Shown here one piece after another: positions 25,864 through 31,573 of a DNA stretch of 64,000 nt. The position numbers and the translations under genes are program-made. This DNA is from Neoconidiobolus thromboides FSU 785 (lineage: Eukaryota; Fungi; Entomophthoromycota): contig MU626290.1 of the NCBI GenBank assembly GCA_025603075.1, positions 1 to 64,000 on the forward strand, in the 5' to 3' direction. Each line of letters opens with the position of its first letter. Position 1 is the first letter of the stretch. The notes below the pieces were generated by a model that did no database searches, was not told the DNA's origin, and saw only the letters and a program-made list of their open reading frames with translations.

Positions 25864-28800
25864 ATGGCTGGAAATAATATTCGAGTGTTATGTAGGTTCC
25901 GTCCTCAAAATAAAAGGGAAATTGAGGCCGGAGGTCAACCTTGCATCAAATTTAGTGAGGATATGACCACCGTTCAAGTTGATGTAAAAATTTAACAATT
26001 GTTTATTCATTCATACTAATGTTATATTTAGAGTAAAGAGTATCCAGGGGATTTTACCTTTGATGCCATTTACGATCATACAACATCCCAAAAAGACTTT
26101 TTTGAGTCTTCAGTGAAAGCAACTGTAGATGGTTGAATTGTTAATTATCACTTAAAGCCAGTATTAATATTTTTTTTAGATGTAATCAAAGGGTACAATG
26201 GAACAGTTTTTGCCTATGGGCAAACAGGTGCTGGTAAAACATTTACGATGATGGTAAAAAGAATTATAGTAAAAAGGAACAAACTAAAAAAAGCTTATAG
26301 GGAGCAGGAGGGTTAGATAATGTAGAATTAAAGGGTATTACTCCGCGTATCATTGAAACTATTTTTGAAAGCATTTATGCTTCTACTTCAAACATTGAGT
26401 ATTTGGTTAAAGTTTCATATATGGAAATTTACATGGAAAAAATTAAAGATCTTTTAAACCGTAAAAATTTCACATTAAGTTTGTATTTTAAATTTACCAA
26501 ATTTTAGCTGTAAATGACAATCTGCCGATCCATGAAGATAAAGTAAATGGGATTTATGTTAAGGGTATGACTGAGCTTTATGTAAGCTCAGTAGAAGAAG
26601 TATATGAAGTTTTAAATAGAGGTGGAGCAAACAGAGTTGTGGCATTCACAAGTAAAATATTATTATTAGCATATTAAATAATTGTTTAATATTTAATAGA
26701 AATGAATGCTGAATCTTCTCGTTCTCATTCACTCTTTGTGATAAATGTCGAACAAAAAAATCTTTCAGATGGAAGTCAAAAACGTGGTAGAATGTTTTTA
26801 GTAGATTTAGCTGGCTCAGAGAAGGTAAAAATAATCTATTCAAATATTATTTTTAACATTTTCAGGTAGGAAAAACTGGCGCTTCAGGCCAAACTTTAGA
26901 AGAAGCAAAGAAGATTAATAAATCACTTTCTGCACTTGGTATGGTGATTAACTCTCTTACTGATGGAAAGGTAATATACAGATTTAATAACAAATTTGGA
27001 TCATTGAATATTATTTTTAGTCAAAACATATTCCTTATCGTGATTCTAAACTTACTCGTATTTTACAAGAATCTCTTGGTGGTAACTCTAGGACAACTTT
27101 AGTTATTAATTGTTCACCTTCGTCATACAATGATGCGGAAACAGTCAGTACTCTTCGATTTGGTATACGGTAAGTTTATTAGAAGCCTATAAAGATAATC
27201 TTATTGTTTTTAGAGCCAAATCCATCAAAAACAAGGCCAAAGTTAATGCTGAACTCAGTCCAGCAGAGCTTAAAGCCATGCTCAAAAAGGCAAAGACTCA
27301 AATCCTTACATTTCAACAGTATATTAACTCATTGGAAGGAGAAACAAAAATATGGCGTTCTGGTAATTTATTTATGTATTTGTTCAAATATAGTGATTCA
27401 CTCCATATTTAGGCGGTTTTGTGCCTCCAGAGAATTATGCTGTTATTCAAAAAGGTCCCGTACGTGCTAATTCTACATCAGTAAATGATTCAGGACCTAC
27501 AACACCCACACAACAGCAAACTCCTCTTTCTCCTACTTTATCCCAAGTTCCACTCTCACCAACGTCATCCGTTTCGACGTTACCACCTAAACCAATACCA
27601 GAGCATTTAGCTGATTTGTCAAGACCTTCTACTCCTGGAACACTCGTTGAAGATGAAAGAGAAGAATTCATCAAACGTGAAAATTCATTATCTTCCGCTT
27701 TAGCAGAAAAAGTATTTATATCATTATTTTCTATCTTATCTAATATTCTAATTAGGAAAATGATCTCAATAATCAAACTAAAATGGCAACAGAGTACAAA
27801 AAAGAGCTCAATGAAGTTAAAGAGGAATTGACACAAGCTTCACAAGAAAATAAACAAATGTCATCCCAATTAGATGTTTTGAAAGCTGAGCTTGAGAAAA
27901 TCATTTTTGAAAAAAATGAAACTCAAATCCAACTTGATAGCATAACTGAGTCAAATGCAGAAATGACTTCCCAACTTCAAGAAGTTAAGGTAGGTTTATT
28001 ATCCTTTAATAAATCATTTACCAACATCAGTTTAGGAAGCCTTGACTACCTTAACTAAAGAAAAAGCAATTGAAGCAGAAGAGAAAGCTAAACTTATCAA
28101 AACAATTGAAATGATGAACAAGATTGAACCAAGCCTTAATTTAGAAAATTGGAATGCTAAAGAAAAAGAGTTGAGATCAGCTATGGCAAGCTTAGATTCC
28201 ATCGAAGGGAAAGATATTGTATCTTCAGAAGAAGCTGAAGCATTACGTGCTGAAGTTGTTCGTTCAAGGGCAGAGATTGAGAATTATGCTCAAATTATTG
28301 GTGATTTAGAATATGAAAATGATGTCCTTCTTCGTAAATGTCATGATTTAGATGAGAGGCTTTCAGCTGTTGAGCTTGAATATGCTGAAGTTTTAGGTAA
28401 ATTTTCATTATTATAATTGCTCGTTAATATTTATTTTATAGAAATTACTCTTGCCGAGGAAGATAACCATGGTATGAGTGAGGCGGAAGTTGCAGATCTT
28501 AAAGTAAGCAGCTTAATTTCAATTACTCTCTTATACTTACCCGAATCTAGGAAAAAATTGAATCCCAATATAATCAGAAAAAAGAGAAACATCTCCAAGA
28601 GATCAAAGAGCTTAAGGAAGTCGTAGAGCGCAAAAACAAAGAAATTCAAGATATGAATAGGTATTTATATTAATATTTTTTAGTGCAGATTAACTTTTAT
28701 AGTAATATCGTTGAATTAAAGCAAGTCAATGAAGAACTCAAGTTAGCTGTAGCTAAAGCTGAGTCAAATAAGCCTAGAGTTGTTGGAGCTGATAAAGAAA

Positions 28801-29380
28801 AGGATATTGAAGCCATTCGTAAAACAATGGTAAATCAATATAGTTAGTTTGTAATTATTATATGAATATTTCTTAGGCAAAGCAACTTAGTGATTTTGAT
28901 GTTATGAAAAAATCATTAATGAGAGATCTCCAAAATAAATGTGAGAAAGTTATTGAACTAGAAATTACATTAGAGTCCACTAGAGATCAACTAGGTGCTT
29001 CTTTGAAATCCAATAATACCAAAAACCAACAACAGAAAATGATGTTCTTAGAACGTAATCTAGAACAGCTTACTACTGTTCAAAAACAAGTAACTATATG
29101 TTTATTCTAAAAAATTATTTAATAATGTTTTTTATAGTTGGTTGAACAAAACACCAATCTTAAGAAAGAAGTGACTTTAGCTGAAAGAAAATTAGCATCT
29201 CGTAATGAAAGGATTTCAAATATGGAAGCTCTACTCAAAGAAAACCAAGAAAAATTGAATCTTCAGTCTCAAAAGTAAGCTATTATTGTTGGCATTATCA
29301 TTATATATTAATTTATTTTATTATTAGATTCGAGAAACAACTTAATAGCTTAAAAGAAAGATTAGAAGCTGTCATGGGTA

Positions 29381-29411
<31 letters not shown>

Positions 29412-30085
29412 TACTAATAACTTTATTTAGCATCAAAACAACAAGTAAATAATTCGACTCCCTTTAGCTTTGGAAGGATTGCCAAACCTTTACGCGGAAC
29501 AGCACCTGTTACAGAAGAACAAGAGCTCAAAAGGTAGCTATTAATTTTTTAAAATAACATGATTAATCAATTATAATTAGTGATTTCGAAAACTTTATCA
29601 ACAGCATTGGAGGGAGTAAACATGGTAAGCAAGCTAACTTTTACATAATGCGCTTAAGGATGATCTTGGATGTAATCCTATGTTTTGGGATTATGAGGTT
29701 GTTAAGTAACCAAGCGATACCTAGTCTGGTCAGATCTTGGGGGCCTCATGTTCGCCAATGGAAATCCAAATCCATTTCACTCTTTTCTTTGATCAAGCTT
29801 TTACCTGGTTGATTTCAATTATGTGTTCATCATCTCTTAACAAGGTTCTATTTATAATATTAAGGCCTCCATGATCTGCCCAAAGATGAGAGTGAAAGTC
29901 AATATTATCTTTTATGAACATGAGCGTCCCTAAGGTCCCGGCTTCGGTTCGCTTTCCTTTAAGCCTTTTTTAATTTTTGTTTATTTAATTATTATTTATT
30001 TATTTACTGGTTCTAAAACTATACTTTTTTATTAGAACGCTCTGGATCAGTCAATAAGCGTACCTCTTGGTTATGGGGTAAATAG
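25864..30085 (+). CDS. kinA: Conventional kinesin (kinesin-1) heavy chain, many exons
   Basis: [11 protein letters not shown]-loop [31 protein letters not shown], coiled coil, tail RIAKPLRG (IAK motif) and final exon [15 protein letters not shown]. Confidence 0.95.
29712..29954 (+). other. Structured RNA element inside the 411-nt last kinesin intron (29625-30035)
   Basis: 29733-29753 pairs with 29916-29937 (21 bp, 3 G-U, 1 bulge). 29775-29791 pairs with 29881-29897 (16 of 17). Outer pairing is 29712-29729 with 29938-29954. Confidence 0.7.
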
Positions 30086-31573
30086 ATACGATCTATTTTT
30101 TGTTTTAGCACTTTTTCATTGTTGGATTCTTTATTATGTTTTACAATAAAATGTTAATATCTTCATCTTAACCATGGTGTTTTTATAAATCATGATTATT
30201 AAAATTCAAATTGATTTACAGGTTTTATTAGATAAATTTAAAATAACCATTTTGAGAGCATTGACTTAAAATATGTTTTAAAACAACATACTTGTTTAAT
30301 ACAGATTAATAATATTCAAACTTAATAAATTTAGAAATTTACTAAATTCACTACAAAATTCAATCTAGTCAACCAAATAGGGGTGGGTTTGATCGTTGAA
30401 TTATAAGTACCAAAATTTGATAACACTAGTCAGCGAAAATTTTGTACTGAGCTGATATTTGAAAAATTCTCAAATAATAGATCTTAAATAAAGGCTAGTT
30501 TGTAAAATCTATTTGTACAAAACTTTTTGTCCTAAATATATTACAAAAGTCCTAATTGATTAATTTTCCCCTAATAATAAACTAGAACTATAGATATCAG
30601 ATTTTATCTCTTTGATATGTAAAAAAAGGTACATATCAAACTACTTTAATAATTTATATCAAATATCTTCCCTATCTTAAATAAAAGATTTTTATATTAT
30701 TTTTACATTGTATATTTTTAATATTTTTAATACTATGTACTATGATATTAATATACTTTCATAAATTGTAGAAACTTAAAGCTTCTCTTATTATTAGTTT
30801 AAGGTTGTATTTATTTTAATAAAAACTTACGCATTCAAACTTATTTAAGTTAATTTCTTGCTAAAATTTATGAAACAATTAGAAATGCTTTCTGTTCATA
30901 GAGTTTAATGTGGGTCTAATAAAATTTGATGAATTATAAATTTTTTGTAAATATTAATTTAATTTTTCTAAGACAATTTTAAATGTTCATTTTAATTTTG
31001 ATAGCTGTAAACTGAATGATCAAATACAGCTATTTAATTAGCCTATTGAATTTTTATAATGAATTTAGTGACAACTGTAATTTTGGTAAGTCTCCGAATT
31101 TATTTTGCTTAATTTGATCTTGCTCAAATTTTTGAGCTAAAAAATATTTTTTCAGTATTTTTACACTGAAGAAAGTAGAATTGTTAATTACTAATGAAAC
31201 ATTGAAAAAAATAACATCGTATGGATTAATTAATTTAATTTTTTAATTATTTATACACAAAACAACAATGATCATTGTATTTAATATAGTATAATCATCC
31301 CTGTTTAGAACTAAAATAAATTAAAATGTTCAAATTAAATATGGTGTAAGGGTAGCAATGATAGTAAAATTACATAAGCATGTGCAATTTAGTAGCAAAC
31401 CTAATTAAGCCAATAAACAATAAGAACCTTTATCAATGGAAAATTATAGTTGGTCACAAACACATATTTAGAAAATTGAGATTTTCTATAATTCTGACAT
31501 CACTTTAAAGAGGAGCTTTATAAAAATAAAGAATGACCTCAATGAAGTTTTGACATTTTAAACTTTTAAAATT

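Follow-up and report, generated by a model that had tools for sequence, protein, structure and literature searches.

The 3′ end of a kinesin-1 gene

The window, a 64-kb stretch of Neoconidiobolus thromboides DNA, carries on its plus strand an exon 100% identical to P0014, the kinesin heavy chain of N. thromboides FSU 785, which we used as the full-length query for host-protein searches. When the stalk exon (28057-28404) was searched exhaustively against proteins, it led to the Massospora cicadina kinesin P0001, and P0001 used as a query returned P0014. Judged by its predicted product, the host gene is a kinesin-1, with a Kinesin motor domain (the Pfam Kinesin domain was found on the kinesin-1 orthologue), a coiled-coil stalk and an IAK tail motif, GRIAKPLRG, which is encoded in the window (29475-29501, plus strand). 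The protein collection contained no relative nearer than that of Entomophthora muscae (66% identity).

The deposited N. thromboides model P0014 (850 aa) ends prematurely at …QKQVTICLF because it runs on into an intron (29096-29137); transcript contigs instead splice to 29138 and add about 100 residues, encoded by five further exons, beyond the end of P0014. The penultimate mini-exon (29581-29624, plus strand) is 44 nt long, ends in codon phase 1 and is bounded by the joints 29531/29579(+2) and 29623(+1)/30035; its translation matches the tail of E. muscae P0012. The last coding exon (30036-30085, plus strand) encodes the canonical tail up to the stop codon TAG at 30083-30085, an ending that is conserved in P0012 and in the transcript-derived protein P0013, and the 3′ UTR extends to a poly(A) site near 30171, marked by a poly(A) loose end in the transcript contigs. 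Deposited kinesin-1 models are thus wrong at their 3′ ends in both N. thromboides and Massospora; the NCBI Massospora model P0001 ends wrongly at …KCLRVQSPR.

Downstream of the kinesin gene, the segment 31109-31173 (plus strand), ending …CUGAAGAA, gave a weak match to the C/D-box model SNORD78 (30.6 bits, where the gathering score is 38; E 0.016 for 2.7 kb searched).

Splicing and retention of the last intron

The last intron (29625-30035, plus strand; 411 nt, GT..AG) starts with GTAAGC and ends with TTAG, and is facultative, being spliced from some transcripts and retained in others. The spliced joint 29624|30036, which skips the 411 nt, was found in transcript contigs of two runs, X6 (depth 504) and X11. 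Neighbouring introns in the same contigs measured 53 and 47 nt, with a third of about 57 nt, placing the last intron at seven- to eightfold the local norm. The original prediction, made from sequence, had singled out this intron for its length against short typical introns and for its higher GC content, and was right on both: the GT..AG joint and the neighbours of 47-57 nt were recovered from transcripts, and GC content was 35-44% across 29650-29950, versus 18-25% in the flanking introns and spacer. The in-frame extension of 62 codons described below, which went unremarked in that prediction, accounts for this higher GC content.

The prediction also overlooked that the intron is frequently retained. 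An X9 contig of 3443 nt, from which the two upstream introns are gone, runs unbroken over 29579-30064 and represents the retained form, and X6 contigs covering 29603-29899 and 29957-30064 span both intron borders at depths of 69-90. Depth within the intron in X6 was about 69, against 504 at the spliced joint, a rough isoform ratio since the runs were analysed as transcript contigs rather than reads. The X6 depth inside both small upstream introns was 0, which rules out DNA carry-over as the source of the intron coverage. Retention is specific to the 29625-30035 intron and was seen in two independent studies. In E. muscae, each of the two kinesin-1 loci is annotated with two isoforms, one spliced (P0012, P0183) and the other retaining the intron (P0185, P0184); that annotation was built with RNA-seq, Trinity and PASA and gives alternative isoforms for only ~7% of genes (PMC11105155).

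Two of the runs gave additional observations. X11, guessed to be a DNA run, contained a contig over 29252-30078 with three spliced joints, so that cDNA or RNA of N. thromboides is present in it. X4 held two haplotypes over 29236-29632, one equal to the window sequence and a second that diverges by about 10%, with indels as well, in the small introns and shows few differences in exons; its sequence suggests a divergent allele, nucleus or sibling strain.

Orthologous introns

We compared the 3′ ends of kinesin-1 genes among related fungi. A long last intron was present at the same codon and phase in N. thromboides (411 nt), E. muscae (351 nt; L004:7427-7777 and L005:7065-7415) and Massospora cicadina (307 nt; L002:7318-7624), and the preceding introns were 34-36 nt in E. 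muscae and Massospora (34-57 nt across the three genera). Two Basidiobolus species have no intron at that position. On the gene structures compared here, the long last intron is a common feature of the three entomophthoralean genera sampled.

The intronless Basidiobolus kinesin-1 tails (L006:6100-6869, L007:6150-6906) end …NKRSSWLASWRNAP, and a porin gene lies downstream in both. In E. muscae, kinesin-1 occurs at two loci with nearly identical introns, which differ at 3 sites in 351 nt: the alternative stop (TAG/TAA), a G-U pair changed to G-C, and one position in the 3′ flank. The E. muscae genome reportedly has a high duplicate-BUSCO content, and two kinesin-1 loci are consistent with this.

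A long hairpin in the N. thromboides intron

The N. thromboides intron folded at −103.6 kcal/mol, with z −4.16 against shuffles (z −3.76 with 200 shuffles; z −4.89 for the core, 29668-29972). All nested stems described originally were recovered, namely 29733-29753 with 29916-29937 (21 bp, 3 G-U, one bulge), 29775-29791 with 29881-29897, and 29712-29729 with 29938-29954. In the 21-bp helix, the G-U pairs fall at 29735, 29739 and 29743, position 29925 is bulged, and the pair probabilities from the partition function were 0.99-1.0. The 5′ arm of the long hairpin (29712-29754, plus strand), which includes a 27-nt block (29728-29754) identical in E. muscae, pairs with the 3′ arm (29916-29954, plus strand), downstream of the alternative stop, at a probability of ~0.99, looping out ~245 of the 411 nt. 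The proposal of a sense-strand structure acting as RNA also held, the antisense fold reaching z −1.25 versus −3.8 to −4.9 for the sense fold, and the structure is evolutionarily constrained, as detailed below.

Other elements of the fold (all plus strand) are specific to N. thromboides or variable. The inner helix 29775-29791/29881-29897 and its apical region (29775-29897) are lineage-specific, with a polymorphic apex, and correspond to an insertion of ~120 nt relative to E. muscae and Massospora. Ahead of the long hairpin, on the side of the 5′ splice site, the fold has two small local hairpins (29672-29694 and 29697-29711, together 29672-29711), at a position not conserved in E. muscae or Massospora. 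An alternative 16-bp 3′ partner for 29728-29745, at 29863-29880, is similar in sequence to the 3′ arms of the E. muscae and Massospora hairpins (AUCUGCC), and a covariance model derived from E. muscae chose it as the partner. Imposing this pairing made the fold 16 kcal/mol weaker (−87.2 versus −103.6 kcal/mol for the MFE); the segment is transcribed ahead of the MFE partner. This segment may be a duplicated 3′ arm, or may reflect a co-transcriptional transit through alternative pairing.

After regression on GC content, the fold energy was compared with those of 310 windows of 411 nt from the 64-kb window; the residual of −2.9 SD was the fourth most extreme, so that the fold is notable, not unique, by energy alone, and it is its conservation across genera that places the hairpin beyond chance. 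A rank of only fourth of 310 is also a point in favour of a relic: the hairpin would be what remains of an inverted repeat or fold-back insertion in the DNA and have no function as RNA, retention would simply reflect poor splicing of an intron that is too long, and the open frame would be a by-product of an A-poor arm. Likewise in keeping with a relic, the E. muscae hairpin folds well in antisense too (z −5.05), and with this composition an open frame is not especially improbable. Against it, the element is single-copy: its sole match in the 24.6-Mb genome was the element itself, so that a MITE or fold-back transposon, which would have explained the structure as a repeat, was rejected for want of a second copy, and a repeat search returned short chance repeats and the inner inverted repeat only. 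The comparison across genera, given below, weighs more heavily still against a relic.

We also considered whether the intron hosts an independent stable ncRNA, such as a snoRNA or a member of another known class, for which a GC-rich, structured, intronic region would be a natural candidate. In line with the original reading, which recognised no C/D-box pair, TPP-riboswitch core or RNase P/MRP motif, a scan with Rfam 15 gave no match in the intron at E <= 10, and the E. muscae and Massospora loci gave none at the gathering score; a literature search found no earlier report of the hairpin element. C/D-box and H/ACA snoRNAs were rejected specifically, with no such box arrangement in 29625-30035 and no snoRNA model match there. 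Intron coverage is moreover continuous with both exons, the region being seen as part of an mRNA, and an independent ncRNA is therefore extremely unlikely. Among the functions first offered for this intron, that of an independent ncRNA is thus not supported, given contigs crossing both borders and the lack of Rfam matches and snoRNA boxes, and that of a splicing regulator provides the best fit, with an effect that we infer.

Compensatory change across three genera

We characterized the pairing of the hairpin in three lineages. The 5′ arms were aligned by codon alignment, and the 3′ partner was taken as each species' own MFE partner; pairs were tabulated from independent per-species MFE folds, avoiding an alignment with E. 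muscae reverse-strand self-matches, which would fake compensatory changes. Independent folding gave z −6.3 at both E. muscae loci, −3.8 in N. thromboides and −1.8 in Massospora, the last of which is not significant by energy alone. Each of the three introns, folded separately, formed a long imperfect hairpin of the same architecture, which begins 70-87 nt past the 5′ splice site and ends 53-81 nt ahead of the 3′ splice site.

The 3′ partners are collinear across the three genera, and eight columns (93, 95, 97, 102, 122, 127, 129 and 134) have changed on both sides with pairing kept, for example from A-U to U-A, or from C-G to A-U or U-A; many other columns toggle between G-U and G-C. For E. 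muscae and Massospora, the alignment of 3′ arms implied by pairing agrees with that from plain MAFFT, UCUGCC and GACCUUGUG being aligned. In a 3x3 matrix of duplexes, no row or column had a mixed pair as stable as the cognate arms (−51.2, −62.4 and −48.5 kcal/mol for cognate arms, versus −25 to −53 kcal/mol for mixed arms); the cognate arm duplex of N. thromboides, at −51.2 kcal/mol, compares with −43.6 and −34.7 kcal/mol when its arm is paired with those of the other genera. The helices contain 19 G-U pairs and no A-C among five single-base mismatches, a bias that favours selection acting on the sense RNA over the decay of a DNA palindrome. Alignment of the orthologous introns thereby bears out the structure first read from one genome, with eight two-sided compensatory columns and a preference for cognate arms in three genera.

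A covariance model built from E. muscae alone recovered the full-length Massospora hairpin (E 1.3e-6). On N. thromboides, the same model gave a partial match only (7.1 bits, E 0.027) and did not recover the whole hairpin because of the lineage-specific insertion. A scan of metagenomes with a degenerate 28-mer of the conserved arm found no relatives.

Variation within the species complex follows the same pattern. Seven of the variants seen in X4 and X6 fall in the apex (29817-29841) and two in an internal loop; two lie in helices and both preserve pairing (29707, G-U to G-C; 29937, G-C to G-U), and only one, a synonymous change, lies in the 186-nt ORF. These results indicate that the RNA helix is very probably under selection. 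They also bear on the relic explanation: the eight two-sided changes and the cognate-arm preference in three genera, at synonymous divergence above 0.8-1.4, exclude a neutral origin, and the excess of 19 G-U pairs over A-C mismatches, of which there are none, and variants that avoid helices or keep pairing point the same way. We consider a relic very unlikely.

The two arms differ in conservation. The 27-nt block 29728-29754 is the same in N. thromboides and E. muscae, all synonymous sites included, and its 3′ partner has undergone about seven changes; in Massospora, 9 of the 27 positions of the conserved arm have changed, and the opposite arm has compensated. Between N. thromboides and E. muscae, the identity of one arm over 27 nt, the drift of its partner by G-U/G-C exchange and the variable apex together form a profile resembling that of a miRNA precursor, and the imperfect duplex of ~60-75 bp could suit a substrate of Dicer or another RNase III, making the hairpin a small-RNA precursor of the milRNA or hpRNA type. 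Massospora, the closer relative of E. muscae, speaks against this, since a trans-acting guide should not tolerate a compensated "mature" arm that differs at 9 of 27 positions. A mirtron was rejected outright: the hairpin base (29712/29954) lies 87 and 81 nt from the splice sites, and the hairpin ends do not coincide with them. A small-RNA precursor is accordingly quite unlikely, and a structure acting in cis remains our preferred reading.

A probable alternative C-terminal tail in the retained intron

We then examined the coding potential of the retained form. Reading through the 5′ splice site, the frame stays open for 62 codons up to TGA at 29810-29812 (29624-29812, plus strand), so that transcripts keeping the intron would encode a different C-terminal tail. 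The translation of 29624-29809 shows 51% identity with the retained-isoform tail of E. muscae (P0185/P0184); the two tails align with no indel across the first 47 codons and have in common R-x-R-M-x-L-D, C-x-G and a 10-residue segment followed by x-WK. Nei-Gojobori estimates between the N. thromboides and E. muscae ORFs were dN 0.43 and dS 1.44 (dN/dS ~0.3). In codons 1-28, outside the long hairpin, the differences number 17, 5 and 14 at the first, second and third codon positions, and this sparing of the second position is expected of a conserved hydrophobic peptide. Codons in the hairpin arm show substitutions without codon periodicity, indicating that the constraint on the 5′ arm is mainly structural. 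The constraint specific to the 5′ arm beyond pairing is consistent with coding as its simplest explanation.

Composition sets the chance of an open frame at 0.02, 0.09 and 0.14 in the three species. The Massospora homologue of the ORF is open for 55 codons and, as assembled, is shifted by one relative to the upstream exon (L002:7318-7345); the frame break adjoins a run of seven T (L002:7328-7334), and could be an assembly error or a true loss of the alternative tail. The core of the Massospora peptide has diverged, with the helix kept through compensation. The alternative tail belongs to no Pfam family and had no usable look-alike in a protein atlas, and a metagenome scan with the peptide alignment found no relatives. 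On balance, we regard the alternative tail as slightly more likely than not to be functional in N. thromboides and E. muscae, where it may be produced as protein.

Such a tail could in principle explain the region without the helix, if the protein alone matters and the segment is an alternative last coding exon in which the hairpin is incidental. The homology of the ORF between N. thromboides and E. muscae, the conserved second position in codons 1-28 and the dN/dS of ~0.3 are what this predicts. The 3′ arm, however, lies outside the ORF and yet co-varies with the 5′ arm, all synonymous sites of the 27-nt core are frozen, and arm codons lack periodicity in their substitutions; coding alone is highly improbable as the full explanation.

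The hairpin could also act after splicing decisions have been made, in the retained mRNA, where pairing between the end of the ORF and the 3′ UTR would form an element that governs translation, stability or localisation. Retained transcripts are abundant and of the polyadenylated type, and should escape EJC-dependent NMD, having no junction past their stop; the alternative stop lies near the hairpin apex in all three genera, and the helix straddles the ORF/UTR boundary. In Massospora, however, the hairpin is compensated even though the ORF is out of frame as assembled, for which a pre-mRNA role fits better, and no localisation or protein-binding motif was identified. A role confined to the retained mRNA is rather unlikely, and we favour an action of the helix on the pre-mRNA.

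A proposed model for isoform choice

The results above establish the intron, its retention, the hairpin with its covariation and the homologous in-frame ORF; on this basis we propose that the hairpin may act on splicing, in one direction or the other. Removal of the intron would give an mRNA for the canonical conserved tail. On retention, the frame would run 62 codons further into a basic, hydrophobic alternative tail, and the retained mRNA should be stable because no exon junction lies downstream of the stop at 29810-29812. The hairpin would join the 3′ half of the alternative ORF (29712-29754) to the segment past its stop (29916-29954), and the loop-out of ~245 nt would bring the 87 nt after the 5′ splice site beside the 81 nt in which the branch point and the 3′ splice site lie. 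Zipping of this kind may let a spliceosome adapted to ~50-nt introns remove one of 411 nt, and the helix, when formed, melted or bound, would shift the ratio of the two tails. In yeast introns, stems are known that draw the branch point nearer to the 5′ splice site and make splicing more efficient (PMC2536676). The zipped N. thromboides intron would still measure ~170 nt, above the lengths of its neighbours.

With a predicted −50 to −60 kcal/mol, the helix is too stable to be a simple thermal switch or thermometer. We put at about even chances a cis-acting helix that influences splicing versus retention and overlaps the probable coding segment of the alternative tail. A stronger version, tentative and rather doubtful, would make this a bifunctional element of the Entomophthorales: a riboregulator toggling between the canonical tail and a basic hydrophobic tail of 60 residues, with the same 27 nt constrained as codons and as a helix strand. 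If so, the second tail may have different cargo, membrane or autoinhibition properties.

Significance and comparison with known systems

To our knowledge, almost no cis-regulatory RNAs have been described in this early-diverging fungal lineage. The kinesin-1 intron provides a clear, covariation-backed case in which three genera of insect-associated fungi have conserved an RNA structure within an intron, and it links that structure to a choice of two C-termini, likewise conserved, in the main anterograde motor. It also offers a testable hypothesis, that of a second kinesin-1 tail, and if the hairpin sets the splice-to-retain ratio, it would be a simple element through which isoform control could be altered by mutation in fungi whose introns are very short.

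The closest parallel is with the zipper stems of yeast introns (RPS17B/RP51B type; Rogic et al. 2008, PMC2536676), in which, as here, most of a long intron is looped out by two complementary arms, one past the 5′ splice site and one ahead of the branch point, and the pairing is conserved. Hosts of both kinds otherwise have short introns. In N. thromboides, by contrast, one arm is also in-frame coding sequence for the retained isoform, retention is substantial, and the effect on splicing is inferred; the duplex is also much longer, with a conserved core of ~40 bp and up to 75 bp in E. muscae.

Long-range RNA structures regulate alternative splicing in Drosophila and mammals. Like the kinesin hairpin, these involve covariation-supported pairing linked to isoform choice; unlike them, the kinesin hairpin has both arms in a single intron, and the choice concerns removal or retention rather than exon skipping or mutually exclusive exons. 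Retained-intron and exitron C-termini resemble the present case in that an in-frame intron swaps the last 16 residues, as annotated in E. muscae P0185/P0184; the kinesin segment differs in overlapping a conserved RNA helix, and its protein is a predicted one. With miRNA-like and hpRNA precursors and mirtrons it shares a long imperfect intronic hairpin, unequal conservation of the arms and a variable apex, whereas its ends lie off the splice sites and, in Massospora, compensated divergence has altered the conserved arm. In sum, the element is of a known kind, a conserved intronic pairing tied to a splicing choice combined with a retained-intron C-terminus, to which the kinesin-1 intron adds an arm probably constrained both as codons and as a helix strand.
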